From Podarcis bocagei (lineage: Eukaryota), in assembly GCA_964188305.1 (NCBI GenBank), contig OZ076885.1: a stretch of 64,000 nucleotides of DNA. One strand, 5' to 3'. Every line of letters starts with the position of its first letter. The first letter of the stretch is position 1. This document shows positions 3,049 to 28,622 of the stretch, piece after piece. Below the pieces are notes generated by a model that worked only from the letters and a program-made list of their open reading frames with translations, had not been told where the DNA came from and did no database searches. Made by a program: the position numbers and the translations under genes.

Positions 3049-3146
3049 GTAAGTGAAAGAACATGGAAGGCAGGTTGGGAAGGAGTGGAGGAGCATTCAT
3101 TCACTGGTCAAGAACTAGGTTCTGATAGTTTGTTCTGTTTCTGCAG

Positions 3147-3235
3147 GGGTCCTTCTGTCTCAAATAAGGAAAAACCTTACTCTTGCTGCAAATGCCTCCA
3201 CACCTCGCCACTTCAAAATGCTAATGTACTCAGCA
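3147..3235 (+). CDS. ACP2: ACP2 exon (human exon 8 equivalent)
   Basis: cag|GG...GCA|gtaagt, 89 nt; (G)VLLSQIRKNLTLAANASTPRHFKMLMYSA; frame continuous with neighbours. Confidence 0.95.
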
Positions 3236-3723
3236 GTAAGTTTGTTTCTGGGAGCTGTGCTTGCCTTCTCATTATTACCATCTTGTGAACTAAACAAAAA
3301 AACAGCTGCAGTTTCCAGCAGTTTCTCCTGCTCTGTGAAAGGAATAAGCAAATTAGTACTTCCGTCTCTTTGCAGCAACTACGGATGCTACAAAAAACCC
3401 CCAGATGCTCTCACAAGCAACAGAGAACTTTGTCACTTAGCCTCTCCTTGTAGCACAGTTCCCAATGTTCCGCTTAGTTTATTTATTTACTTACTAAATG
3501 TGTTAGTCGCTTTATCTTGTCCAGGGCAACCCAAAGCAACTTACAACCAAACAGGGTGTTGAAATAGGTGCCAGCCTTTTTTCCACGGCCCTGGAGCCCC
3601 TTTCTCAGTCTTCCTACCAGCCCCTTGGGAATCTCTGCCAATCTGCCTTCTTCTGAAATGTGGTTTTAAGTCCCCTTCCATATGCACAAAGGAGATGTTC
3701 ACATTTTTCTTCCTCTTTCTCAG

Positions 3724-4817: not shown

Positions 4818-6622
4818 CATTTGCTCCAGCCCCTCCTGAGGCAGCAGGAGAGCACGGTGCTGACTCTAGAGACAAGAGGGGCTTCTTTCAGTGACTAAGG
4901 GTCTTCTTCATTTGTCCCGATTGCTGCTTCTAAGCCAAAAGGCCCAGACTCTGTGGTGGAGCTGTTGTGACTATCGGTGCAGTCGAGCTGCCAAGCGAAT
5001 AATACCGTCATGAACTAGGAGTGAAATGCAAGCATGATTTGGGGTTGCTGTTTGCCAGTACGCGACTGGTTCTATCAAGGACCCCGGTCTTGCTTCTTTT
5101 GAACCCAATATGCTGAAGTCTCTGCTACTGGTGCAGAATGGGCAGCCTTCCCAACTGAAACCTGCTGCTCCTCAGAAAGCCTTGCTTCCACCTGGCGGTT
5201 GTTACTTGAACCTCCCTGAACTGTGGGAAAGGGGCCTGGTGCTATAACTGCCTTCTCCAGCTGAGTTATTACCTGGGAATCAAACCACTGCCTCTCTGTC
5301 TTATGTACTTGGCTCTTAGCCACAGGGTCCATACAGAAGGATAAGGTTGGGGCTGGACCCAATCTTCTATAACAGAGGAAAAAACGACTTTCTCAAAAGC
5401 AGCCTTCTTCCCATTTGTCACTGACTACAGAAATTCAGTAAGTGGAACGCAGTACACTTCCTCTGTCTCCCCACTATTTTCAGCCTCAACGTATTCTTAC
5501 AAAGCAGTGCAGCCTTGTGTTTAGTGGGAAGTGAACTAGTGGAATTTAGAAGTGCTTATTAGCAAAGGCCTGGCTACAATCTTTAAATGCCCTATATCAT
5601 GCACAATATTCTGGACCAGCAGAGATTCAAAGAAAATCTGCTGTTTTAAAAACAAAGGTAAGTCTCTGAGGCAGAAAAAGTAGCTAAGTATGTTGCCCTA
5701 TAGAAAGAATCTTTGTGTATCAAGTGTAGCTTGAGAATTTCACAGTAAGGATCTGCAGCTTTTGTGGAAAATCCTCCTATCACGCCACACTTTATATATG
5801 ACAGCATACTTATTCTTTCTAATACATCTTCAAGCACTTTCTCATCATGCATGTTATATCTGACATGCAAAGAACACAAAAATAAGCATCTCTGCTGTTC
5901 TAAAAACACAAAGAAATTAAGAACACTCACAGCTGCACACAAATGTCTTGGGTACAAACAAGAAGAGAAAAAGCGAGCCCAGACCCAGTCTTGAACAGAA
6001 GTGCTTCTGAGCATATACAGAATGTGTTTCCTTCATGCTTGAAAAACTACAGCTTACCTGCTCTCTACATACACTAAGGAATAAGAGTCCAGGCATGATT
6101 GCAAACACAGGCATGAGTTCCCCAGCATACTTTGCAATCAAATAACACAGTCCTCCTCTCCAAAAAACTGAACACACTCTTTGCTTTTCTTTCCTCCCTG
6201 CTGCTTCCCATCTCCTTTCAGACATAGCTCCTCAAAACAAGAAACCAGTGTTCTCTCTGCACATTTCTCTGTCCTGCTCCCATAGGCAAGAAAGCCTCAT
6301 TCCTTCGTCTTCACCCAGGGCTCAGTCCAGGAAATCTGAGGCCAAATCCAGAAAACAGAGTCTGTCCTTTCCCTCCTTAAAAGTAGCCCATGCTGGTTTT
6401 TCTCCCCACCTTTCCCAAGTGCAGCAATTGAATTCTTCAGAAAAGAATCAGAGGCTTGAAAAGAACAAGAGGTGCTTAATAAGAACATCACTTGTTTGGT
6501 GTTTTCCCTTGGATGCAGAGAGGAAGCCAGGATTTTTAAATATGGGAGCTGGATGAGAAAGCAGCTCTGCTAAGTGGGAAGAGTTAGTTACTGGGACAAC
6601 AGCAATAAATATTTAAAATGGC

Positions 6623-10251: not shown

Positions 10252-10508
10252 TCAGTCCTCTGAATATTTTCCTCTCTTCTTCTTCTCTTGTAATTTATGC
10301 TCTTTGCCCTTTGTTTTGGTGCTCTCTAATTCAAGACTAAATAGTTTAGTTTTAAGTTTGCTTGCTCCTGTGGTTGATTGTCTTTGGTTCTGTGTCCCCA
10401 GTCGAGATAAGCGTCTGCATCTCATTCCCTGCTCTGTCATGGACTGCATGAGACACTCCTGATTCTGGGTTACCATTTCCTCCCGACTCCAGACCAGAAT
10501 ATTAAAAC
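10252..10508 (-). CDS. DDB2: DDB2 last coding exon (10)
   Basis: ggcag|GT TTT AAT ATT CTG GTC TGG; (G)FNILVWSREEMVTQNQECLMQSMTEQGMR...EKKKRGKYSED*. Confidence 0.93.
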
Positions 10509-12138
10509 CTGCCAGAAAAAAGGGACAATTTTAGGAATTCTGCTTTGGAAAGCAAAATAAAAAGTACATTCTAAGAGCTCTGACCATCACCAGCGAAAAT
10601 AAAGGAATTGTTCACATGATGCTGATACAAATGCTTTGCTCATATACTACGCAAAAGAATGAAACTTTACTATCTCTCCTCTTACCCCCATCTCTCTTCC
10701 CACTTTCTTTCCCGCCAAACCCATATTGCCTGTAACAGTAATGTCTCACTCTGAATGTGACTGGCCTGTATGAAGAAATATCTGACTTGAAAACAGAGAC
10801 TCTGTATGTACTATTGTTACCCAAGTACATATTTTAAATGATGATGATAATAATAATACATCCAAGAGCTCAGACATTGTCTGCCAGACCTGCTTACTTC
10901 CCAGCTACTAAGGTTTAATGGAGTGATTGGCTTTTGATGTTAGATCTACAAAGTCTCATTACAGGAACAGAATCCAAAGTAGTAGCTAATAATCAGGTAT
11001 ATCAGTAATTCATCTTTCCCAACACTTAACAGTACCTTTAAGTTAGACAGCTATGCCTGAGTATTTTTTTATTTCATATTTTCAAACACCTCTTAACACT
11101 TTATAAACCTCTTTAACACTTAAGACAGTTTCTTAGTGGTTTATAAAATTGTGTGTGTGTATGCGCCCCTGCAATTATGTGTAGTATATATATGGAGAGC
11201 GAGAGAGAGCAGACAAGGAAACTGAGAAACAACATTAAAATACAATACAATAAAATCCCCCAAAACAAACACAAAGTGGCAAATTATAAAAGCATCTTAA
11301 GAGTCAATTATCCCTTCCCCCTTCCTTGACTCACAATATACAGCATTCATCTCAATGACACACACACATTACATCCGAATTCTGTCTTACATCCACTCAA
11401 ATCATACATCTGCTGCTCATTCAGTATCACTCATTCCATTCTATTCTCACACATCCACCCGCTCACACACACAATCCACACACTAACTCCCACAGTATCT
11501 CCCACTCAGTCACTAGTCATCATCACCAATCACACTGTGCACTCAGCTAAAAACGTACTGCAAAAACACCAGAAGACAATGAAGCTATAGCCTGAGTGAA
11601 TCGTAGAAAATAACAAAACTAACTGCAACCCATTAATCATGCAGATTTACTGCTCCTAACAGCAATCTGCCTGTCACTCAGGTTGCTGCCTCCCACCCAA
11701 GACTCCCCCCCCGCCTCCTTTCTTCTCGCCAAGGAATCCTGATACGCCATTTACTTATCACCTGGTGTTTCTCCCCTGTCCCTTGCTCTCTTGCATGCCT
11801 TTATGATGTTGCCAAATTACCTCCAAGCAAGGAAGGGTCCGCTTAAGAGATGAAGCAGACTGGTGGAAACTAGCAAAAGTGTACAGGTTCCGTCCACAAT
11901 CCTTGGTACAGACAAAGGCACTGGTATACTGGTACTGCTAAAAGGTTTATTTGTCCCAGGTGCTAGGTAAATTTACTTAAAGAATCCATATAACTGCCAA
12001 GGTTAATTTATTATGGGCCTTCTGTCTTTTGCATTACTGCCTAAAAGGCCAATAGATGGCAGCAGTACTCTCCTTTCAATAGACTGTTCCACCCTATCAT
12101 TTCTAAGCTAAAGAACAAAGTAGTCAAGGGTCAAAGTA

Positions 12139-12622
12139 CCGTATTTTTCCGTGTATAAGACGGTGCTTTTTGTTTTTTTTAAAAAAAGGCAAAAATTGGG
12201 TGTCAGCTTATACATGGATAATGAATGCAGAGGGGGGACATGTGATTAATGCCAGCAGCAAGCAGGAGATTGGCAGCGGTGATTGGTGGTTGTGGCAAGG
12301 CCTGCTGGCGATTAGCTGCAGCAATTGGGCAGGCAATCGGTGGCTGTGGCGAGGCGGGTAGGCAATTGGCGGCCACAGCAAGTGGGTGGGTGGGCTGTTG
12401 GCGGCTGCGAGCAGGCAGACAATTGGCGGCTGCAGTGAGGTGTGTGATCGGCAGTGACTGTGGCAAGCGATCGGCAGTGGCGGGCAGGCGGGCGAACGAT
12501 TGGCAGGAGTGACCTCCCCCACCCCCCCAAAAAGCTAAACAACTTAATTTCTTAATTTTGGGTTTAAAAAAAATAGGGGTCGTCTTATACATGGGGGGCA
12601 TCTTATACATGGAAAAATACGG
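12139..12622. mobile_element. Tc1/mariner (Tc2/pogo-like) MITE with an internal GC-rich minisatellite
   Basis: TIR CCGTATTTTTCC(G/A)TGTATAAGA matching at 21 of 22 positions; TA on both sides; internal ggcaggcaattggcggc-like repeats at about 12255-12510. Confidence 0.85.
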
Positions 12623-13093
12623 TAGGTGTGACTGTGACAGCAAGAGATTGCATGTGGAAAGACACAAAACTGGCCCGTTCACATGCTAAGCAGGGACTGG
12701 TATCTTTAGCAGCAAAAGGATCCCACAGGAATGGGGTGATGAACTCTCCTCAACCTCATATTTTCTCTGTTTCTGGCTTGCTTCTGGTAACAAAGCCAAG
12801 AAGGTGGCTGGAAGTAAGGCATGGGAAGGGTTCTGCACCACTCTCTCTTGTGCTTTTATTGTTAAAGCACCACTCATTCTTCTGTGTATGTAAACAGTCT
12901 TAAAATACAACTTTTGTAGTTGTTGAGGAAAGGTAGGATAAAAATGTCCCAAATGAACATCTAGAAAGTGTTATAGGTATAGCCACAAAATCCCACCCCA
13001 TTGTCAGCATGCTTTTATCTGGAGAGTGCCTGATTTTATCTGGTGAGAACAGTGGTCCATTATCAAATGTGTAAGATTAAACCAACCACTCAC

Positions 13094-13139
13094 CCATTCC
13101 AGAAGCCAGGGTGTCTCCCATAGGGTTAAACTTATTGAG
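13094..13139 (-). CDS. DDB2: DDB2 coding exon 9
   Basis: gcag|CTC...ATG G|gtgagt, 46 nt; LNKFNPMGDTLASGM. Confidence 0.96.
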
Positions 13140-14055
13140 CTGCAAATGTAAACACAATAATGCATTGTATCCATGTCGGTTGTTCACTTAACATCATCAA
13201 TCAAATAAAAAACCAGAACATTCTGGACAGAGAAACGCCCAGCACTGGATGTGGAAAGAGTTTTGCACAAATCAGCAGAGCTTTGAATAGAAGGTCTCTC
13301 CATCTCCCACCTATCAGTCTATCACGAGATGCGTATGGTGACAAGAAGCAAAGGATTAAAAAGATTTTTAAAAGCCTCCTGCAGAAAATTAACTGACAGA
13401 TCTAACCAGGAGCCTCAGTAAGCGGCTCTCGTGAAATCTGGCTTAGGAAGAGGCAGCTCTGGCAACAGGAGATAAAACGTTTCTTCCACCACAAGAATGG
13501 AAATGAACCTCTGCCTCAGAAACTGCATGGGCGCACAATTAAGATAGGTTTTTTTTAAAAAAAATCAGGGCTCTGATTTCAATTCTGAACATCTGGTGTG
13601 GAAATAAACAACTCAGGTATTCTTTCCCACAGCCCACACACCAAATGAATTGACATGAACTTTGTTTATTGAAGTTTGGAGACAGCTGTGCATCTCCTCA
13701 TTTCTGGAGTTTAGGAAATGAAAGGCATGCCTCTGGAGGAAAGGGTGGGGCTATTACAGTAGTCTGTCCAGGCATTCAGTGGAAAGGCTGGAATTTGCAA
13801 CATTGCAAATGGCTAGTTCAGCAGCTCTTTAAAAAAAGAACAGCTAAGAAAACCTAAAAAATACAAATGTCTCTGCTACAGTTCACAAACACATTCATCA
13901 GTGGCAACGACAAAAAACTGATTCTGATGATCTTGACTTTGCAGAAAGTGGAAGGTGCCTCTTCCTCCCTGAGGTCTCCACACAATGTAGAAACTCTGAC
14001 AGCTCTCACACTTCTTGCTGGTCAAGAGATACACATCAAATGCATAGACACACAA

Positions 14056-14205
14056 TCATAGAATTGCAGAGTTGGAAGGGACCACCAGGGTCATCTGGAA
14101 GGGACCATCAGGGTCATCCAAGCCCCTGCAATGCAGGAATCTTTTCCCCAACATAGGGCTTGAACCCACCACCCTGAGATTAAGATTCTCCACCGACTGA
14201 CCATA
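14056..14205 (-). mobile_element. Short retroelement with a CR1-like 3' tail (CR1 fragment or CR1-mobilised SINE)
   Basis: catagaattgcagagttggaagggacc is the reverse complement of the CR1 tail seen at about 8480-8520; contains an internal tandem duplication. Confidence 0.6.
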
Positions 14206-14740
14206 CCTAAGTCATCCCACATGTACAGAAAACTCCGGGGTGGGGAAGGGGTCTCATCTCTGACCTTACACCATGCTTTGGATGATTCAGTAGCAGCAAG
14301 AAGTCTTGTTGCTGCCAAAGATCTCCCAGGTGCAACATGGGGTCAGAAGTGAGACACAGAGGAAGGTCAGAGTAATGGAAACCACAGGTGCTGGCTACCA
14401 AGACAAGCTAAAATGTGTGAAGCCATGGCCACATCCAGTACAATAGAGCAGTCCAGGTTTCAGAGGATATCTCTCCATTAGGCACTAGTGGTCCTACCAA
14501 AAAGTGGTAACACAGGGCCTCCCCACCCAAGTGAACTCCTGCTGTGAATATGTCTGTCCTTAAAAAAGAGCTGTGTGAGCTATTCTTAAGGAGAAGCGCT
14601 GTATTGGAGGCAAACATTTGTCACAAGCAAACCCATCAATCAGTTGCACCATATAAGAAAAGAAATTATTATTTCCCTAACCCTCTCACTTTTTTGGGGC
14701 TGGGGCACAGTAGCTCTTTGGACATGCTATCTACACTTAC

Positions 14741-14905
14741 CGAGATAATTCCAGATGCATTTGGATCGTGCAGCTGGCACACCATCTCCCCACTGTTTCC
14801 ATCAAATATGTCAATGGTTCTCAACTCGCCCACTGTGTAGCTTGGGAACCTAGGGTCTGGGTAACGACCCACCACAATGAGGTCATAGCGAGGATGCCAT
14901 GTTGC
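14741..14905 (-). CDS. DDB2: DDB2 coding exon 8
   Basis: tttag|GCA...TCG|gtaagt, 165 nt; [55 protein letters not shown]. Confidence 0.97.
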
Positions 14906-15470
14906 CTAAAATAAAGAAGAGATGGTTAAGCAAGGTCAGTGCTAAACTGATACGTGTTACAGAGGACTAGGATGACGATGACAACAACAGTCTTATCAAG
15001 TGCTGGCGTTCTGTGGGTCATCCAGATTCAGCTCGTACCCCCCACATGGGAGTAAACAAACTGCAGACCTTTCAAGGTAACATAATGTAGCAACATAATT
15101 TCCATAGGTTCTTACTAACCCTACCACTTGGAACTTGTGTACAAATCTAGGGAGACGTTCTGATTACAACTAGGTGCCACTGCCCTAGGATTCCTTCTGC
15201 CCAACCCTGCCACCAATAATGGTTGCTGTCACTGTAGATTCCAGTCTAAGGTTGTATACTGGAATGCTTATTTATATAGATTCATAATCAGAAGCAGAAT
15301 GAACCACTCTCCTCAATATCCTATACTTGAATCTATACATATAGAAAGAGCCTGTCCATAAGGCTCCCAGCAATTTTCCATACAGGAGTTGTAGGATGCT
15401 TTTCTTCTTAACTCTCTGCTCCCTGCATCAAATGGGTCACGCTTCCAAGTCAACACTCCTATTTCTTCAC

Positions 15471-15616
15471 CTTGATAGGTGTAAGGTGCTGGAACTGCCG
15501 ATGGGGATGTGAAATCAGATGCTGGGGTTTGGACCAATCAGAAGAGGAATAGACCCGGATTTCATTGTACTGGTCAGTACTCAGTAGCTTAGCCCCATCC
15601 GTTGGGCTGAAATATG
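15471..15616 (-). CDS. DDB2: DDB2 coding exon 7, containing the FQH lesion-probing hairpin
   Basis: cccag|CA TAT...AAG|gtgaag, 146 nt; (A)[48 protein letters not shown]. Confidence 0.97.
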
Positions 15617-16720
15617 CTGGGGAGGAGGGGGAGAAAACAGGAATATGTATAAATGTATGTAAATGTATTGTGGCCAATAACAAAATAAATTATCAATGAA
15701 ATTTTATATTTATATATTATATTTGCAGCTATGATTACTATCTCACTATGCTTATTATTAGTAGTAGTAGTCCTGTAGAAGAATTACAATAAATGTGTAA
15801 TTGTTGAGTGATGGTCTCTTCTAAAACAAATAAGAGCAACATTTGAATATGTCCTAAACAGCACCAGTTATAGACATAACTAGAATGTAATACACAATCT
15901 TATCAGAGAACAAAATGCTGAATTTCCACCAAAATCAACCAAACTATCTGCATAAATCCTTAAGTACCACTGATTTCATTAGGTTATCGGTCTCTAAATT
16001 CAATTTCCTTGGACTTAATTAAATAAATTCACACTGACTTCACTTTTAGCTTTACCACACACTTTTTAAACAAGACTGAAAATGTGAAATGACAATTGCA
16101 GAATTTGGGGAGGCAGGGACTGGTTTAGAATTCAGTGATTCTGAAGTAACATTTAATATAAATCTTGAATATTGCACTTGGATATTTGAAATACATAGTG
16201 TGGCCTAAACATCAAGTTTTATTTGGAATCTTTTTCAGATGCCCAAATACTGATTGCAAGTAAATGGCCTAATCAAAGACCTCCTATGTTGAAGGATAGG
16301 GAAATTATTACTATGATTTGGAATTTGGCTGAAAGATGTGCATTAAAGAGATGGTAAACAATTCTTGTTACACTTTATTTATGAACACAATTCAGACATT
16401 AAGAATAAGATTAAGAATAAGATTAAGATTAAGAATAAGTGTTGCATAATATATTTTTTAACATGGAAAATAATAACTAAGCCAACACCTCTATTCTTCT
16501 CTGTTGTTGTTTTTATCCTGTAGGGCTAACATTACTATTAAAACTTGATTTAAATTTTAGCAAGTCTATAGACACACTCAGTATAGACACACTTCATCTT
16601 TTTGACAAGACATGTGAAACTATGACAGGAATAGGACTAGTGTTTGTTTTTTTCCACATATCTTCCAATTTCCTTCACAACTTAGGCCAAGGTTTGAAGG
16701 CACCTTATAATGTGCTTGTA

Positions 16721-16935
16721 CAGTGGTACCTCGGGTTACAGACGCTTCAGGTTACAGACTCCACTAACCCAGAAATACTACCTTGGGTTAAGAACTTTGC
16801 TTCAGGATGAGAACAGAAATCATGTGGCAGCAGCAGGAGGCCCCATTAGCTAAAGTGGTACCTCAGGTTAAGAACAGTTTCAAGTTAAGAACGGACCTCC
16901 GGAACGAATTAAGTTCTTAACCTGAGATACCACTG
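16721..16935. mobile_element. Tc1/mariner (Tigger-like) MITE
   Basis: TA|CAGTGGTACCTCGGGTTA...TAACCTGAGATACCACTG|TA; very similar copy at 51544. Confidence 0.88.
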
Positions 16936-17119
16936 TATCTCATTTTATCCAAACAATCTTGCGAAGTAGCAGGACTGGCATTGACCTTTACAAGGCCAAC
17001 AGCTGGTACAGTGAATGCAAGGTTTAAAGACAAAGGCATGTGGCACTGACCTGAAGCACGCACAAGCCAAGAATGGTTAGGTGGCAGAGTATAAGCCATG
17101 AGCCACTTTGCTTTCTTAC

Positions 17120-17297
17120 CTGCATTAACGGGTTTATCATGTGGAAGTACATGAAGAGAACTTGACTTGTCCTTAATGTTTCTCAGATCCCATATCTTTA
17201 CTGTCTGATCCACAGAGGCTGTAGCTAAGAGCCAATCACAGTGAGAATTGAATTCCACGTGAGTTACTTTCTTTTTGTGCAGTTTCAGGTTCCATAC
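17120..17297 (-). CDS. DDB2: DDB2 coding exon 6 (WDxR motif)
   Basis: gcag|GTA TGG...GCA G|gtaaga, 178 nt; [59 protein letters not shown]. Confidence 0.97.
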
Positions 17298-17756
17298 CTG
17301 CAGTGGATAAAACAAAAGCCGAAATGCATTACAACTACAGAGCAAGAGATTTAGACATCAAACATAATTTTCTAGGAGATGGTAAAACCTCTTTTAAAAA
17401 AAATATGATATGGAAGACAGGAGAATATATGCTTGTATTCTAAATCAGCCTAATAAAGACAATTCCAAAACTCTACCAGAGATCAAAGATTAATCTAAAT
17501 AAGGAACTTCCAGGTTCTCCTCCTGGGGAATATGATCTCTGTAGTAAAGGGAACCTATGGTTCTCCAGATGTTGTAATACTACAACTCCCATAATCCTTG
17601 ATCAGTGGCCTTGCTGGTTGGGGCTGATAGGAGTCCCAAATCATCCATGATATATATTCTAAGTCAGGGCAACATTAGGCAGATGTTAAAAATACCCAAA
17701 ACCTATGTATGTCTGATCAAAGCAGGCTGTAAGGCAAAGAGGAGGGGCACACTAAC

Positions 17757-17856
17757 CTTTTCACCCTCAGTACTGAGCAGAACTACGTTGCCCACATTAT
17801 CACCTGTCGCCACAGTCCGGCAAGTTGCAGATACATCAACACTGCAGTACCAGAAA
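17757..17856 (-). CDS. DDB2: DDB2 coding exon 5
   Basis: tttag|T TTC TGG...AAG|gttagt, 100 nt; [33 protein letters not shown]. Confidence 0.96.
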
Positions 17857-19272
17857 CTAAAAAAGAAAGAAGTACAAATTCAGAATGTTCACCCCCTAGA
17901 TGTACAACTAAGGTGGTTCTCTGTTCTTAGCAGAATGCAAAAACAGTATTTATATAAATAATGGAGTCACAGCTGCGCTGAACTGAACCCTAGTGGCATT
18001 CTGATGTGGGATCAGTGTTGGATTATTTATCAAGTAGTGTAAAAAACCCAACAGGCATCACTTGGAAAAGCCAAGCACACTCTTTAAAACATTCACAATG
18101 TGTATCGCATCAGTTCTAAGTATTTGAAATGAACACTAATTTTAAGTGTTGGAAAAGGGGTAGATAAGTTTGGACGTCGTGAAACACAGGAACCCAAAGC
18201 TAGCCCAAGACACTTCACTGCCTGGTGTATAGGTCAAGATGGCTCACCACCATCACACACACACTCCCATGGATACAGAAGCTGAGCAGACTGGCAGATG
18301 ACTCTTATTTCAGCACTGGGGGTGAGACAGCATCCACCACACTTCAGAGCAACAGGCTAGCTTAGGGGGCAGGAAATAGGGGCAGAAGGCAGACCTTGTG
18401 GCACACACTGCTCTTATAGGGAAATAGTTGAGGGGCTCAGAAAGTAGAGCAAGGGGCTTCTACTACTGCCCTAAAACATCTGCTAACATATTCTGTCCAA
18501 TGGTAGGGTTCGTCCTGCAAGTGTGAGAGCCAAGTCACGCTTTCTGTGGCAGGTGAGATTGCTCCTTATCTTTCACGTCTTCCAGTAAACCTCCAAAATG
18601 CTTGAAAAAGAAACCCAGATCTAAACAAGCATTAGAATTCTATACATTCCTCTTTCTTTGAGCATATTGCATGCTACCTCCCAATACTAACTCCCAAACA
18701 TGAGGTGCAATTTATATCTTCAAAAAGTTTCCCTTCCTGTATTACTTTGTTTTAATGGGAGACATGCAGCTGATAAATGTTCCTGCTATATGAAAGCAGA
18801 CCTTATTGGCTCTGATGCACAGCCACACTTGCTCAGTTCGGGACAATTAGGCAGTGTAAAGATAAAACCCCAGAACCTGTCTTGTTCACTCTTCTTTGAG
18901 CATGTGTGACATGGTTAGAGTGCTGCAGTTTGTAGAATTCCTACTGAAAAAGTTGTTTGCCTTCTCTACGTGTCAGGTGTGCTATACAGGGTATGCTATG
19001 CACCCAAGGAAAGAGGGATTTCCAGGATCTCAACACTCCATCAAGCAAAACACTACTCAAGTGCTCATGCCCACGAAAAAGCCAAACTACTTCCATTTGC
19101 TATTATGCACAACAGTAATCGTATTCCAATCCACATGATCAGAAACGTATTGCCTCCAATAGGCCCAGGGAAACAGCCCAAGCAAATGCTAATAATCTGT
19201 CCTGGCACATTCAAAGGAAGGGTAAAGGAAATTTATGAGCTGAACAACGACACTGCCCTTCTCACTCCTCAC

Positions 19273-19439
19273 CAAACATCATGGAATTCATGGTCACAGA
19301 CTGGGGTGCGGGAGATCACTTGCGCTGGTCGGCCCTCAAGGTGCTGTAGACTAAGGGTGCCATCCCCTGATGCCACATAAAGATTTGCCGACTCAAATGG
19401 GCTGAATTTCATGCCTCCAAGAGAGTCTCCTGGGCCTTT
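19273..19439 (-). CDS. DDB2: DDB2 coding exon 4B (duplicated, predicted mutually exclusive with 4A)
   Basis: Pyrimidine tract...ttccag|AAA GGC...GTT TG|gtgagg, 167 nt, open frame; KGPGDSLGGMKFSPFESANLYVASGDGTLSLQHLEGRPAQVISRTPVCDHEFHDV(C). Confidence 0.88.
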
Positions 19440-20151
19440 CTGGAACACAGATGGGAAGAGGAGAGGAATATGCCTAAGTTACTGAGGAAGGATGGGAATA
19501 GGCAGTCAGCACAACCTGGCAGAGATGCACTGAGTTCAGGCTCTAGGTGAATTCACACCTACCTACTTAATGCTGAACATTGCACCTTGTACAGTACTAG
19601 CTCTGAACTAGTTAACTTCTCAGATGTTGCATGCAAATTTCTTTCAGAAGTTCCACTTCAAAAATGTTGAGAAGCTATACAATATCCTCTTCAAAAGCAC
19701 CAAGCAATTTAAAAAAAAAAACTAAGAGAGAAACATTAAGCCATCTGTGTGCTAGTAGACTGGTTTATCAAGCTCCTTCTTGCGGAACTATTAGTATTGA
19801 CTTTCTACTCTTACATTCTTTAACACTTCCAGTACCTATTTAAACATAGAGCAAACAAAGAATTTTGCAGAGCTAGGATAATTCTGAGGACAACATATAA
19901 CATTATGTCTCAAGTCACGACACACACCCTCTGTCTTTAAACAAGTATAGTACTAAATATTCCCAACTGTGTATAGAAAACGCAAATAAGTTCTGCACCT
20001 TTATGATAAAGCCAGGCAACTTCCCACATATTAAAAAGTTCCCTTCAGCTACATTAAGGTTCCTCTTGTTCCAACTAAAGGATGTGAATGTGGCAACTGC
20101 AACTTGATATCCCTCCACACAATTGAAAAACCAAGAATAAATTGGAACACT

Positions 20152-20467
20152 AGGGCTTGCTGATCAGAAGGCTGGCGGTTCGAATCCCCATGACGGGGTG
20201 AACTCCCATTGGTTGGTCCCTGCTCCTGCCAACCTAGCAGTTCGAAAGCGTGTCAAAGTGCAAGTAGATAAATAGGTACCACTCCGGTGGGAAGGTAAAC
20301 GGCGTTTCCGTGCGCTGCTCTGGTTCGCCAGAAGCAGCTTAGTCATGCTAGCCACATGACCCGGAAGCTGTATGCCGGCTCCCTCAGCCAATAAAGCGAG
20401 ATGAGCGCCACAACCCCAGAATCGGCCATGACTGGATCTAATGGTCAGGGGTCCCTTTACCTTTACT
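20152..20467 (+). mobile_element. Sauria-type SINE, 5'-truncated, between DDB2 exons 4A and 4B
   Basis: Shares gatcagaaggctggcggttcgaatc, gtgcaagtagataaataggtacc and the tttaccttta tail with the 1851 copy. Confidence 0.85.
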
Positions 20468-21993
20468 ATTCCATCCTATTGAACCTCATCACTGAAATTG
20501 TCCATTATATATTTCTAGGAAGGTATTCGTTCACAACCTCTCTGCAGCTGCATCCAGTGTATTGTTTATTTTACTTCTCAACAACCATTGGATCTTCTGG
20601 AGATTCCATAGCATAGAGGAAAACTAATCTAATTCCATCAATCTTCGCTTTGCTGCATCAAAATGTGAAGACTTCACACAAAAACTTATGTCACATTTAT
20701 TCCTTTACACAAGGACCTCCATCTGTGGAGGGGTATAAAAATATTACATGAGGATATCCAAGCATGTGTCTGTTTTGCTTCTGATATATGCTTCAGATAA
20801 CTACTGTGAGAATCAGATTCCTGATGCCTGAATTAAGGAGGAAAATAAAACACTCATGCAACCAAACCTACATTCAGGTTGACACAGATAAAAGTTTATT
20901 CACACATTCTTCCCAAAGCTGGTGTTAATATCAGTATCAGGACAAAGTAACATCAAATAAAGTGCTCAATGAAGTTTCAAAAGATCCTAAGATAGCTTAA
21001 GAACAAAAAATGTGAAACTGGTAAGCATTCAAAATGAACCCAAAAACAAGGGATATGGTATCACAAGATGCTGACAAAATAAGGATGAAAAAAGAAGAAG
21101 AAAAGAAATTCTAATGTATCTCAGTCTATTGTCATTGAAGGCTTTCCTCAAGTGTCAAAATGAAAAGCAGCCTACAGAGATCTCTGTTAACAGCATCACT
21201 TATTCACAGCTGGCAACACAGGTGGATGCCACAATATTCAACAGACTTATTGCGGCAAGAAAGTTTGTGAAGAGCCCACTTCATCAGATGCACTTCTTAA
21301 AGGTGCTACAAGGCTCTTTTTTGTGTTTGCTCATAGTCCGAAACACTGGTGCCCAGAATAAATGTAAATTGTAATACTGAATATGTATGTTTCATTTGTA
21401 AATATAATTCAAAACAAGCTTAGGAACACAATAAAATAATATCCACTTCTTTGTCACGTGCACAGGGGAGTTCCCAAACTACCAATCCCCTACCACATTT
21501 CCAACATTAATTTGTTCTGTTATGGCTCTTTATCTATCTATTCATTACAGTATGTTTGTTATTGCTCGGGTATATGTCACATGTACAGACAGATCATGTA
21601 CATTTAAGGCCATAAATTCAATCTGATGCATATTTGGGAAATATATCTCTGCCAAATGAGAAAGAACCCTTTAGGCAAAGAGATAGGCTTCTGCAAAATG
21701 ATTCACTATGTTTTCCATAGCGATATCAAATTGTACACTGTTTTCCTCCACATTGTTTTTTTACTTATGTAACCTGCCTTAAGGCCCAGTTTCATGGGGC
21801 TAAAAGATAAAGTACATGATTAAAGCAAATAGTAGTGATTCAAGAAGAGCAAATCATTCACATTCTGAGTGAATAACTCTGGTAAGAGCAGGGTGAGGGC
21901 CGACCCATGCCGAAATTGCACCACTTCCTCTGTTTTGTTGCCTTCTAATACTAGAAGCAGTGAGAGGTGGGAAAAACTTTTATCACATCTTAC

Positions 21994-22139
21994 TCCCAGT
22001 TGTCGGTACTGGTGAAGACTCGAATTGTATTTCCATTAAAATCCCGCAGGGCAGTAGTTCCAGCAACTGATGAAGTGTACAGCTCACTAGGGTTAAAAGG
22101 GTTAAACTTCATTCCTGTGATGGCCCCTCCAGTTCTCAT
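21994..22139 (-). CDS. DDB2: DDB2 coding exon 4A (mammal/fish-like version)
   Basis: tatag|ATG AGA...TGG GA|gtaaga, 146 nt, open frame; [48 protein letters not shown](D). Confidence 0.92.
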
Positions 22140-23384
22140 CTATAATGAACGGGATGAATAAAAACAGAAAGCCACTCAGAGATGAGGAAGAAGGAAAGTC
22201 CCTCTTGTTATCTCATCTAACACCAGTACAAGGCAGCATTCATCTTTATGTGGCATTAGCCAAGCTGAACAAATATCCTCATAGAGGAGAAGTTTCCTCT
22301 GGCCAATACAATTTCTGTTAAATAACTGCCATGTTGAAGAGCAAGCCTGCAGAACTCCTGGCACCGTCTACATCTTGAGTGGCTTGGCTCAGCTTCTTCT
22401 CAAGGTTGCCACCATGAACTAAACTGTTGAAAGTCACCTACTCAACCTCTTTACAAGAATGGGTTGTTCTGTGAACAGTTGCTAAAGGACTGAACCTAAG
22501 GGTACCAGAGGTGGGAGCAGGGAAAGGGATAAAGGATAAGACCGCAGACAAGTAATGTCCCAATGGAGGGAGGGGGTACTATATATGAAGAGTTTCAGGA
22601 GCTCAATTTGGGGGCTGAATTATTACCTTCTTGTGAGGATTTGGGAGGATAAAATGCAACATGGAGGTGATGCCAGGAAAGCTGTTCTGGATGATAAACA
22701 ACAGCTTGGGAACTCTGAAACTTCCATATTCATTGTTGCCATAATACTCCCCCTTATTTTTGTTTGATAAAGGTGCAAATGAAAGTCCAAAGTCATGTTT
22801 CTGCCCAGAGTATTAGTCTTATGCTTTTGTGAGCTTTTCTTTGGAATGTCTAGGACGATATTATTTTAAAAACATTTGCTTGAATACAGACAGATATACA
22901 AATCATAGCAGCTCAGTATCCTTGGAGAAGACTTGGAATTCTCAAGGAAGCTATTTTCTTCCTCTGGGTTTGCTCACCCTTTAGAAAAGATGAAGTTCAC
23001 TCCACAGATAAACACAAGTGTATTTTGCCAAGGAATTATTAACAATTCAAAGCAAGGCCGATGGAAAATATTATTTCATTTGCGGGGACCTCATTCCTTC
23101 AACTCAATGAAGTACTTTCACATCTAACAAAGCATGAAGCTGAAATAAAGAGTTAAGACAAATAAAAAACCTCTCCAAATACGTATGTATTTTCTATTTT
23201 AGAGTAAAAATTATCTAACTCAAATATGTAGCCAGATCATTCCCTTGCATAGAAAGCTGGGAAATTACAACACAGATTTATCCAGTGCAATGGAGTTCTA
23301 ACTAGAAGCCTTCATCATTAATCTACATACCGCTCTAACACAGAGCTTGCATAGACACTGCATTCGATCTTCACAATGACTTAC

Positions 23385-23576
23385 CCCTTTTATGAAGCAG
23401 CTTTTATTAAGCATTTCATAGTCCCAAAGGATGATGTCTCCACCTTTGGAACCCACAGCAACTGTGCTGGGGTGCGTTGGGTGCCATTCCAAGCATGTAA
23501 CCCTCCTGTCAAAGGGACTTGCTGTGCGGAACAGGCGGTACGAATAGAGGGAACGTACAAAGGGCACCTGAAGACA
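23385..23576 (-). CDS. DDB2: DDB2 coding exon 3
   Basis: aacag|TGT CTT CAG...AAA GGG|gtaagt, 192 nt; [64 protein letters not shown]. Confidence 0.96.
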
Positions 23577-23589
23577 CTGTTACAAAGAC

Positions 23590-23592
<3 letters not shown>

Positions 23593-23622
<30 letters not shown>
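23593..23622. repeat. (GA)15 microsatellite, read as (CT)n in the polypyrimidine tract of DDB2 exon 3
   Basis: Perfect repeat ending about 15 nt before the acceptor AG on the minus strand. Confidence 0.95.
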
Positions 23623-23625
<3 letters not shown>

Positions 23626-24871
23626 GCCCTGCAATTCCCATATACTCAAGTCTGTGCTACTCTTCCAACTACTGTATACTGCTAACAGGTTCAACTGTGG
23701 ACCATACTACACTACATGCATCCATATGTATCTTCCCTCTAATTTTCTTTTTTAACAGAAAACAACCTCTAGATCAGGTGTGGATCAGGAAGCTTTTTGG
23801 CCAGATCTTCATCTCCCCACACCCTGCAGGCTAACTTTGATAGGTGAGTCAATGAGCTGTCAATCAGCTGATGTCATAATGATGTCATAATGTTGTCAAC
23901 ATGCATTTCTGCATCTAGATGATGCAAGCTTCACCAGAGGTACAACAAGAGGAGCTGTGGAACTCTTTATCTGCTCGTTTTTCTACTTTAAATTGTTCCC
24001 CTCCCCAGCTGGTTTTCTCCAGAAATGATAAGGGGAAAAGGAATATGGTGAGAAGATGAGCAACACGACAATGAGAAATTATTATCCTGTCCATACAGGG
24101 GCAAGAGTGAAAATAAATGGTACTATGTATTCCATAATTTTACATTTGATGTGGTGGAGGAAAGGAAAAGTTTGTAGATAGCCATGGTTTAGCGTTGCCT
24201 CTCATCATAACCTTAATGCTATGAGCCTGAACAAAGCACTACAGTCACACACTCCCCCCTTCTCCTTGCCTCCTCCTGCATGGCTAAATCAGCAGAATTT
24301 ACTTTAGCTTTTAAAGAATCCCAGCTTAGTTACAATTGGACCAAGGATGTTGTTTTTATAGAAACTTCAGTTAGCCTATCAAAACAGGCCAGCTTCATAA
24401 TCCGTGGTTTCAAGTTGACTTGTTATGAAACTTACTAGAGTTTTGTTTTAAACCAGGATTCCTGGTTCAAAAATAATGCTAAGCCAATATACTTTAAAAG
24501 TGGAACTATACTCTGCCATAGTCAAAATAAAAAAATTCCTTCCAGTAGCACCTTAAAGACCAACTAAGTTCAACAGGAGGAGGAGGATGGAGAAGAGTCA
24601 GTCTTTCTCAAGCTCATTCTAGCTAAACTATCATTTAGCATTATGTGCAAATGCAACCAGAGTGTCATGCAGGGGGGAAAAGGAAAAATCTACACATGGC
24701 TGTATTATGCATACTATGGAGGAGGGAACATAAACATGGGTCAAACAGTCAATAATAACAGAACTGTAACTCTTTTCTCCTCCACACTACTATGCAGAGT
24801 ATGCATTTAGATAGAAATAGAAACTGCAGGAACCTTAGGTGTTCGGCCAGTTTGTAAGGAAAAACACCTAC

Positions 24872-25002
24872 CTTTCTGAGCTGTGTCCCAATAGCACCAC
24901 CCAGCATATTCTGATGTAGATAATGGACAATGTTCTTCTGTGTCTCTCGCTGATGGAAGAACACTCCTGTTTTTCTGACCATGGATCCATGGAAAGCTTC
25001 TC
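24872..25002 (-). CDS. DDB2: DDB2 coding exon 2 (DDB1-binding helix region)
   Basis: ggcag|GA GAA...AGA AAG|gtaggt, 131 nt; (G)EAFHGSMVRKTGVFFHQRETQKNIVHYLHQNMLGGAIGTQLRK. Confidence 0.9.
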
Positions 25003-28000
25003 CTGCCAGACAAAAGCAAAAGTTATATTACTACCTACTTACATGCTCACTTAGGACAGATTTCAGGTTTTTAAAAAATAAAATAAAAATGGACACATAC
25101 CCCAAACTGGAGCCAGGTGCAATGAAACAAAAAAAATACTTTAAAACAAATTCTAGTCAGTTTTCAAAACAAGCCACTTCAAATCATGAGTTATAAGGCT
25201 GGCTTGTTAAATTAACCAGAGCCTATTTTAAACTGCAGTCTCTGGTTTAATTGTAATAACAAGCCAGGATTCTGTGAAAGCAAAATAAAACACTGCTGAA
25301 GTCTCTTGCTGGACATGTTGAAGGAGGTAGGGCGTATACAAGCCCAAGTTTGGGTTGGACTGATTCCAGCTTCTTACACATTTAATGCTAAACTACTACA
25401 TGCAAAGTACTCCACTGAGCTCAATGAGGCTTACTCTCTGGTTAAGTATGAATAGCATTGCAGGTTAACTCTCACTACACTAGACTAGGAGCAGCAAACT
25501 TTGGCAACCACTGGTTAGGTGGGTGTATAATATTGAGTGGTTTAAGTTTCTGAGCTACTCCAACTCTTCAGTTGGCTGGGTGTTAAGCAAAAAAAACACA
25601 CCAAAATAGTAGAGGGCAATGAGAAGACTATGCAAGGAAATAACAATGGCTGCAACAGGCCTGAAAAAAAACAGAGGCTGTATTTTGCCCCCTTTCTGAT
25701 CTGAAATAGGTTAGCAGTCAGTATAGCTCTACCAGGTTAAAAATGAGCTAAAAACTAAGGCAGCTGGAGACATCATTCTTAAAGCACAGTGGAAGAAAAT
25801 AAATATTGGCCCAGTTTAGGATAAAAGCACAATATTCCAGATACTTCCAAAAGAATGAGTACATAAACCCCAGCCAAGCCCCCCGGAGTTCCTGCAGAAA
25901 CAGAATATTCCAGGTTTGTTCTGTAGCCTACAGAAAATGTGCAGAGCTATTGGCAGGCTGTTCTCAACAAACAAACCTGCTGACTCTTCATGGAAAAGTC
26001 TAAAAACACTGTTGTCCAGGGAGAATTTTGCTGAGCAACTCAGCTTGGGATTTGTTTTCGAACATTGGTTCTGTGTTTTGTGTTTAATTACCAGAGGCAT
26101 CTACAGCAACACAGAATCTGACTGCAACATATCTAATCACCCCCAAAGCAAAGGAATTCGGCATATTGCAATTTCTTAGGAGTCAGACGACAACAGTCCT
26201 CATCATGAGATAGAAGCAGATTAAATGAAACTCTTGAAACATGTATTTTTGCAAGGAAGGGTCCATAATAAAACAAAAGTGTTTCCTTAGTCAACCAAAA
26301 GGTGAGAATATTAAGGATGCAACCCCCATTCAAATAACAGCAAAACTCCCCACTGATTTTAACTGGCCTGGTAAATCTCTCTGTCATAGCAGCATACATA
26401 AAAAGGGGGCACAAACAGAGGTGTTGAGTGCTCCCCCATCCCTGGCAAGTACTTTTCTTATAGTCAGTCTTACTTTAAACCAGAGATTTCCAAACTGTGT
26501 GCTGTGACACCGTAGTGTGCACTTTGTAGGTGTGTCGCGTGAACACTTCCTGCACTCTTCCCGGGGCTGGAAAGGGGGTAGTTTAACCTCTGGTTTCCTA
26601 GTAAAACTGAATTACTGTGTTGCAAGTTGATGCATGCCTAAAAACTGTGTCACCAACATGGAAAGTGGAAAGCTCTGCTTTAAACAGTGGAGCATGAGAG
26701 TGCCTGAAAAGGGACTCTACTGGCCCTTTCCACCGCATGAATGGGGCAGACTCAGATTTCAAAAGATGCAGTCTCATTATTGCCACATACAATATTGGGT
26801 CTCTGTCATTCCTCAGCTGGGAGACTCCTCATCAGAGGACAACCTGTAGTCCCCAGCACTACCACAAGCCTGGGATCAGACTCAGGCTGAGGTGAGGCCA
26901 TCCACACCACAAGTGAGTTCAGCTTCTGGGGTTGCGTGTGCACAAGTCCTGAGTCTGGAGGGGAGATGGCACCTCAAATGCTAGACAGGATCCACCTCAA
27001 TAGAAGGGCCTGTCTGCAGACAAGCACTCCATAGGGGCCAATGAGACTTCTGGATGAAGGCAGCTGATAGGAGTCATCTGGATTTAGGGTGTGAGTCCAG
27101 CACTTCCAGCTCAAAAAAACCCCCATACTTGGCTGGAAGAACTGCTGGAACAATGCTTTTGTACCAGAACTGTGACAGATTTGGCTGACTGACTAGCCTA
27201 AGCCTGACCTCAGACCTGTCACCTGCCATGCCTTTGTTTGCCCATGGATTAAACTTGAAGATGACCTCAGACTATCCCGAGCTTGCCTCTCGCTAGGCTT
27301 CTTGTTTTAGGCCCTGATTACTTGGACCATAACCTTGGATACCACTTCTGCTTGTGCTCCTGTCAGTATTGCCTTAACCCTAATCCTGTTTCCTAAAGAA
27401 TCTAGTGAGAGCAGTACAGCCCAATTTTGAACATGCATGTGTCCAATGCTTTTACACTTCTAGCCTTATCTGCACTATTGAGAGACTTCTAATGTCAAAA
27501 GACTTTTAACACAGAGAGTTATATTTGGACCTGCTTATATCATGAAGATTATTTCTTTAAGAGGCTTTATTTTCTAACGTTTTTCGGGTTGTACAAAGCT
27601 TCATCTTCTTTTTAAAGCCAGTGCAGTTTTTTGAACAACACTCGTAAAATAACATTCAAACAAAAACTAAGTGAAGTGTTAAAATAGGTCCATAAAGGGA
27701 GATATGGAAAAGATAGATTAAAGTGCTTTTACCAGATAAATTGGAAAGGCAAAATATACTGGACTGCTGAATGGGATAAATAAGTTTCAAGGAAAGTTGA
27801 CCAAATGTTCCTGTACTTGTCTTTGTGTTCACATCAATGCATTACTAGTTCAAATAGGGAAAGGGAGTGTAAACCATTTATTCACTGTTGTATGGAAAGG
27901 AACAGCTTCTCCTTCCAGCATTGAAGCACCATTCATTTCTCTGACCCTGGAGCACACATGACTCAGGGCCCAGTGGTGAATTCCAAATAGCAGGAATGCA

Positions 28001-28447
28001 ATTGCAAAACATGCATATATCTGAAATATAATGAAGTTTGCAGGACCAAATTAAATAATTACCAGAACTCAAAAAGTGTTACAACTGAGCAGCCCCACAT
28101 GAAGCGGCAAAGAATTTGATTTCTGCTTCATATTGCTGTACAAAGCAAACTTTTAAAACTCTCCCAATTTCACTATGTGGGGATTAAATTACCTTTGTTA
28201 GTTAAGTGGCAAACCACCAAAACAAGCTGCATTTAGAGCTGATTTCATTATTACTATTTTGGCCTAGAGAGAAGCAAAAGGCTTGCAGGAAAAATGACAG
28301 GGGAAAAGATTAAATATGAAGAGATCAAATTACATGTACCCATGGTCTGTTAGCAATAGCAACTATCTGAACAAACAATACCACTAGAATCAAATTGAAT
28401 TAGCATTACATTGACACATATGAGAAATGTATGTTTTTAGGCCTTAC

Positions 28448-28622
28448 CCATTTTCTCCAGAATCTTGGGGGCTTTTTTCACAAGTAATTTATTTGCATAT
28501 GGCTCATTTTCCAGCTCTCTGGTGTCTCGCTTCCTTTTCCCAGTTGTTTTTGCCTCTTTTTCTGATGGACACTCAGGAGACTTTTGTAGTTTCTTGTCCC
28601 TTGACTGCTTCCCAGGGGCCAT
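28448..28622 (-). CDS. DDB2: DDB2 first coding exon, Lys-rich N-terminus; acceptor lies 1 nt before the ATG, so a non-coding exon is upstream
   Basis: accag|a ATG GCC...ATG G|gtaagg, 175 coding nt; MAPGKQSRDKKLQKSPECPSEKEAKTTGKRKRDTRELENEPYANKLLVKKAPKILEKM; phase 1 fits exon 2. Confidence 0.88.

Follow-up and report, generated by a model that had tools for sequence, protein, structure and literature searches.

DDB2, a WD40 substrate receptor of CRL4, is the earliest sensor of UV photoproducts in chromatin, and losing it leads to xeroderma pigmentosum group E. In the stretch of DNA from the lizard Podarcis bocagei analysed here (64,000 nucleotides, referred to as the window), the DDB2 gene includes two versions of exon 4, designated 4A and 4B. 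Exon 4B ends in a Cys/His loop with the spacing C-x-H-x-x-H-x-x-C at the place where 4A has D-N-W-D. The locus raises the question of whether 4B is a real exon of the gene and, if so, what its loop does at the site where damaged DNA is bound. The initial annotation had suggested that the Cys/His cluster could bind zinc or act as a redox-sensitive element, and that the loss of the 4A Trp would reshape the lesion pocket.

Exon structure of DDB2 in the window

The exons of the window were found by tblastn to align along teleost and bird DDB2 proteins. The peptide encoded by exon 4B matches only DDB2 chains in the PDB at E <= 0.01, and the Phe-Gln-His hairpin of DDB2 is present in the same gene, on the minus strand. 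As judged from these alignments, the gene is DDB2 beyond doubt. Its features, in the order of transcription, are listed below.

10303..28622, minus strand: rough span of the coding exons of DDB2 (teleost and bird DDB2 proteins aligned to the window by tblastn)
near 28446-28622, minus strand: DDB2 exon 1 (tblastn)
23385..23578, minus strand: exon 3, which ends ...CFIKG and joins to either 4A or 4B
21994..22139, minus strand: exon 4A of DDB2, 146 nt, phase 0 to 2, acceptor ttatag, donor gtaaga
19273..19439, minus strand: exon 4B of DDB2, 167 nt, phase 0 to 2, acceptor ttccag, donor gtgagg
19273..19300, minus strand: Cys/His loop at the 3'-end of exon 4B, V-C-D-H-E-F-H-D-V and the TG of a split Cys codon
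17757..17856, minus strand: exon 5, whose first base T completes the split codon, followed by FWYCSVDVS...; it holds the equivalent of Trp239
about 15468-15656, minus strand: exon with the DNA-inserting hairpin HRQFQH (tblastn)
10303-10509, minus strand: last DDB2 coding match (tblastn)

The loop is encoded by exactly the last 28 bases of exon 4B, which read on the minus strand (G)TC TGT GAC CAT GAA TTC CAT GAT GTT TG and are followed by the gtgagg donor. Exon 4A ends ...STDNW + GA, and the codon split with exon 5 becomes Cys after 4B (TG+T) and Asp after 4A (GA+T). When joined to exon 5, 4B reads ...TPVCDHEFHDVC-FWYC and 4A reads ...TDNWD-FWYC; the spliced translations run ...SRTPVCDHEFHDVCFWYC and ...TSTDNWDFWYC, respectively, and the 4B ending also reads ...SRTPVCDHEFHDVC-FWYC across this joint. 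The two exons share 34% amino-acid identity over their first 44 residues. Exon 4B exceeds 4A by 21 nt, which is exactly 7 codons, and the alignment places the extra residues at its 3'-end, so that both the extra length and the reading across the exon 5 joint are as first described. As the lengths of 4A and 4B are both 2 mod 3, the use of both exons or of neither shifts the reading frame, and the use of one at a time keeps it.

Elsewhere in the window, the GC content between 38001 and 40000 is 0.62 versus about 0.42 in the remainder, probably marking the CpG island of a neighbouring gene. A tRNA scan of the window found none.

Splicing of exon 4B

Contigs from four small transcriptome-sized public runs, representing four related organisms and four studies, were placed on positions 17700-23600 of the window. 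These runs are RNA-like by a guessed label, and the spliced joints in their contigs show that transcripts are present. All four runs contain the joints 23385>19439 and 19273>17856/17855, which connect exon 3, 4B and exon 5 and whose introns have canonical ends; in run X1 a single contig of 2282 nt passes through exon 5, 4B and exon 3. The joints for the other version, 23385>22139 and 21994>17855 (exon 3-4A-5), were found in run X2 only. Contig depth in this run was about 60-82 for 4A and 204 for 4B, values from which no ranking of the two forms in abundance can be inferred since the runs were chosen because they contain exon 4B. Among the contigs of the four runs no joint between 4A and 4B was found, contigs being able to miss rare forms. 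Hence exon 4B, taken as an exon in the initial annotation, is genuine, is spliced into transcripts and is mutually exclusive with 4A.

Across the 167 nt of exon 4B there were no differences from the window in runs X1-X3 (three organisms), and over about 1130 nt an intron contig of run X2 carried 54 differences and 13 gaps. In X2 and X3, exon 5 begins with C instead of T, with the Cys after 4B and the Asp after 4A both kept. One contig of depth 2 in run X3 joins exon 3 straight to exon 5 (window 17855-23385), skipping both copies of exon 4 and shifting the frame. The intron between 4A and 4B holds a repeat at 20150-20466, at which contig depth lay between thousands and hundreds of thousands in each of the four runs. 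It has numerous loose ends, resembles a tRNA in its 5' part, and is probably an abundant SINE, perhaps Sauria-SINE-like, as would suit a squamate.

The arrangement resembles that of the tandem-duplicated mutually exclusive exons known from OGDH (4a/4b), U2AF1 (3/Ab) and SCN5A-type genes (5a/5b). These are likewise adjacent homologues of the same phase, ancient and under purifying selection, used one at a time, with a frameshift when both are included. The DDB2 exons have the same phases and the same flanking exons, are not joined to each other in the contigs, and occur as orthologous pairs in distant species; the pair behaves like a member of this class. DDB2 is unmentioned in the main text of the two human tandem-exon catalogues found, in keeping with an absence of the pair from human annotation, and human DDB2 presumably has a single exon 4.

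Age of the exon pair and selection on 4B

Within its length filter, a word search with the 55-residue exon returned two ORF fragments that share 75% identity with the lizard exon and end in ...APDCGHELHNV and ...APDCGHENHNV. In the genomic contigs of these fragments, L001-L006, 4A is followed about 1.6 kb downstream by 4B and about 1.15 kb further by exon 5, and the donors are GA|gt for 4A and TG|gt for 4B, as in the lizard. The label bird-like reflects their nearest named protein, a partial DDB2 from the bird Todus mexicanus. A region search with the goby protein yielded three proteins. Profile searching across 1.84 billion representative proteins added many more 4B-type fragments together with full-length teleost proteins, and a search with the full length gave 120 teleost DDB2 models, among which isoform pairs 7 residues apart occur in many species (Morone, 493 versus 486 aa; Acanthopagrus, 492 versus 485 aa). 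One isoform of the pair ends ...SRTQDCGHDHHNVC[YF]WYCC and the other ...TDTLN[YF]WYCC. Both forms are already annotated by NCBI as isoforms X1 and X2 in many teleosts, with models numbering in the dozens, and the sequences themselves are therefore not new.

In a maximum-likelihood tree of the exon peptides, the 4A clade has a support of 99/97 and the 4B clade of 96/92. Lizard, bird and teleost sequences occur in each of the two clades, which dates the duplication before the split of ray-finned fish and tetrapods, and the single exons of the invertebrates Lingula and Haliotis place nearer to 4B. Between the lizard and a bird-like contig, dN/dS was 0.16 for 4B, 0.26 for 4A and 0.30 for exon 5. 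By these sequence comparisons, 4B is under purifying selection and the pair is ancient.

The sauropsid contig L008 carries a well conserved 4A at 3146-3292 and, at 4904-5068, a 4B that is 60% identical to that of the lizard. In this 4B the Gly-Pro-Gly-Asp and Ser-Gly-Asp-Gly positions are changed, the frame is open and C-G-H-E-Y-H is kept; constraint on 4B may have been relaxed in this lineage.

Conservation of the Cys/His loop

Proteins were sorted by the body of the exon alone, with the loop excluded, which gave 95 4B-like sequences. Earlier counts had been partly circular, the sequences having been picked by the motif itself, and were replaced by this one. C-x-H-x-x-H-x-x-C is kept in 88 of the 89 loop-bearing vertebrate 4B sequences, most of which are teleost and related by descent, so that they do not represent 88 independent events and the lizard and bird sequences carry most weight. 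The remainder of the 95 consists of three Lingula proteins with a short invertebrate form and three loop-missing models or fragments (P0004, P0036 and P0026). In the genomic ORF fragments the last position of the motif reads W, which is the TG of the exon plus the g of the donor. The sole exception among the 89 is an anchovy paralogue (P0061, Engraulis encrasicolus 'DDB2-like', residues about 185-200), in which the loop reads G-G-H-D-D-H-N-V-W, both Cys having been lost together and both His kept. The spacer positions vary (G/D/V/I, D/E/S/T, H/N/Y/F, N/D and V/L/I).

In these alignments the four Cys/His positions are invariant in lizard, bird and teleost 4B exons, far beyond what chance would give. 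The motif thus withstood the comparison of orthologues by which, according to the initial annotation, a lack of conservation would speak against a role. The same annotation had given this spacing for chicken DDB2, and it was found here in the bird-like contigs.

The single exon 4 of invertebrate DDB2 has a body somewhat closer to 4B, with a mean identity to 4B versus 4A of 0.41 versus 0.34 for Lingula and of 0.34 versus 0.31 for Haliotis. This exon (P0065 of Lingula, P0068 of Haliotis) carries a Cys-His pair before F-W-Y-C, in the form N-C-H-D-F-W-Y-C, and its short loop, equal in length to that of 4A, has a single Cys and a single His, whereas the full pattern of four residues is found only in vertebrate 4B. 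The N-C-H-D of the invertebrate exons indicates that a Cys-His pair at the pocket predates the vertebrate duplication.

Position of the loop relative to the lesion pocket

According to a review of the structure 3EI1, Pro191, Ile213, Trp236 and Trp239 of zebrafish DDB2 form a shallow pocket near the flipped-out 6-4 photoproduct. This pocket makes no hydrogen bonds with the lesion bases, and a hairpin enters the duplex with its residues Gln372 and His373. A phmmer alignment of exon 4B to 3ei1_B placed Pro at chain position 117, Ile at 139 and Trp at 162. These are spaced as 191, 213 and 236, with a constant offset of +74, and three of the four pocket residues are accordingly encoded by exon 4. 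The zebrafish ending T-D-S-W-D-Y, which is 4A-type, contains Trp236, and Trp239 is the exon 5 Trp of [FY]-W-Y-C. This alignment to a 4A-type structure supports placing the 4B loop on the DNA-binding face, next to the lesion pocket, as the initial annotation had done.

The pocket positions read Thr/Val/Trp/Trp in lizard 4A and Pro/Gly/(C-H loop)/Trp in lizard 4B. The 4B pocket differs from the published one at two of the four positions, with Gly for Ile213 and the Cys/His loop for Trp236, and Pro191 is kept. The Gly is invariant in all 53 4B-type sequences aligned. At the position of Trp236, Trp is found in lizard and bird-like 4A and in the zebrafish structure, and most of the 48 tabulated teleost 4A forms have Leu, Arg or Met. 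As aligned, this is the position of a variable, mostly hydrophobic wall residue and not of a fixed Trp. The claim that 4B loses the Trp of 4A consequently holds in so far as the loop replaces Trp236, and has to be qualified in that this Trp is itself variable among 4A forms.

The solved structures of DDB2 are those of zebrafish (3EI1, 4A08, with 6-4PP or CPD DNA) and human (3EI4, 4E5Z, 6R8Y). They show the product of the same gene, folded into the same seven-bladed WD40 propeller, and share with the 4B form the hairpin HRQFQH and the exon 5 Trp239-Tyr-Cys. All of them are 4A-type, as seen from T-D-S-W-D-Y in zebrafish and from the aligned body in human, and the 4B form is unlike them in its loop, longer by 7 residues and with C-x-H-x-x-H-x-x-C for Trp236, and in having Gly for Ile213. 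A search for a structure or biochemistry of a 4B-type DDB2 found none.

Structure prediction and motif searches

AlphaFold2 was run on the 4B isoform of Morone. It gave the DDB2 fold, with a confident propeller (core blocks 85-94), a pLDDT < 50 at loop residues 196-199 and, in Foldseek, a best match to 3ei1_B with a TM of 0.84. In the control, the 4A isoform of Morone, the pLDDT was also < 50 at loop residues 192-200, although the 4A-type loop is ordered in crystal structures. The equally low control makes AlphaFold2 uninformative on the 4B loop, and the use of its low pLDDT as evidence against a preformed zinc site was dropped.

Small Cys2His2 or Cys/His zinc sites, such as zinc knuckles, offer a likeness in that 4B also has, in a span of 9 residues, four Cys/His that are invariant and separated by variable spacers; four such residues close together in sequence are the usual feature of a Cys2His2 zinc site. 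They differ in that the spacing of the 4B loop, C-x-H-x2-H-x2-C, matched no described zinc motif, a Pfam scan having returned WD40 families only and a PDB sequence search with the 27-residue loop segment zero matches. The loop was also compared with carbonic anhydrase, in which His-x-His ligands lie on a strand. The two Cys of the loop are spaced C-x7-C, i.e. 8 positions apart, with no CxxC, and the next Cys, that of W-Y-C, follows 4 positions on. A zinc or redox role of the 4B loop, as first put forward, is a plausible hypothesis.

Interpretation of the 4B loop

The most likely single reading of the conserved quartet is a metal site, which we propose tentatively. Exon 4 contributes a part of the WD40 propeller whose loops on the top face give three of the four pocket residues. 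Choosing 4B retains the Pro, exchanges Ile213 for an invariant Gly and replaces the wall at Trp236 by a loop 7 residues longer, in which Cys, His, His and Cys are fixed among variable neighbours directly before the exon 5 Trp. The four residues would act as one unit, most likely as ligands of a Zn2+ ion, which would stiffen the longer loop. The lesion pocket would then be more polar and have another shape, and the 4B form might have a damage preference or affinity unlike that of the 4A form known from work on human and zebrafish.

Ranking next is a loop free of metal, whose invariant His and Cys would touch the flipped-out dinucleotide or nearby phosphates in place of the Trp236 wall. It is suggested by the replacement of a pocket residue by the loop and by the general tendency of His to stack on bases or to bind phosphate, and the low AlphaFold2 confidence, seen also at the DNA-inserting hairpin (334-338), would fit a loop that becomes ordered only on DNA. 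Nevertheless, direct contact rarely requires that four Cys/His be invariant and fixed in their spacing while the residues next to them vary, and the published pocket binds the lesion without hydrogen bonds to its bases, which leaves this reading possible but doubtful. A role of the same loop in contacts with protein, either a partner recruited to the lesion or the histones of nucleosomal DNA, with the lesion pocket not shaped by it, would agree with an exposed, conserved loop on the top face of the propeller. We consider it improbable, as DNA occupies that face in all solved complexes and no partner is known for it.

Improbable to a similar degree is a redox switch, in which the Cys pair of the loop, or one of the pair with the W-Y-C Cys of exon 5, would be joined in a reversible disulfide and thereby adjust DNA binding during oxidative or UV stress. 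Neither loop Cys varies, the third conserved Cys is near, and the only lineage lacking a loop Cys, the anchovy P0061, lost both together, although this is a single example and possibly an effect of annotation. Such a switch would leave the two invariant His unexplained and would employ C-x7-C where CxxC is usual, in a protein that resides in the nucleus, a reducing compartment. The idea that 4B is a decaying or neutral copy with a functionless motif draws on the divergent 4B body of L008, beside a 4A that is well kept, and on the annotation models that trim the loop (P0004 and P0036). It is strongly disfavoured, to the point of being very hard to credit, by the splicing of 4B in mRNA-like contigs of four organisms, by the low dN/dS of the exon and by the invariant Cys/His from teleosts to lizards; even in L008 the C, H and H are retained and the frame is open.

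Implications

No literature was found that connects DDB2 with exon duplication, with mutually exclusive exons or with a Cys/His loop, and the structural work found for DDB2 is all on the 4A-type protein. For annotators, models projected by homology can trim or merge exons 4A and 4B. The public models P0004 (Todus mexicanus) and P0036 (Periophthalmus) begin with the 4B body and have the Cys/His loop cut out, and P0169 (Lucifuga dentata) strings 4A and 4B together in one protein. P0216, another model of the Periophthalmus species of P0036, has the full loop.

In its widest form, the metal-site reading would mean that fish, reptiles and birds carry a second, metal-dependent UV-DDB sensor, with a pocket built around a Zn-bound Cys2His2 loop and directed at different lesions or of different affinity, that mammals lost it, and that the textbook pocket is the derived half of an ancestral two-sensor system; as a whole this picture is unlikely, and we offer it as a conjecture. 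The questions that the exon pair raises for DDB2 are whether the 4B form binds metal and whether its lesion spectrum is different. From teleosts to lizards and birds, an exon that changes the pocket at two of its four positions and bears an invariant Cys/His quartet has been kept since these lineages split.
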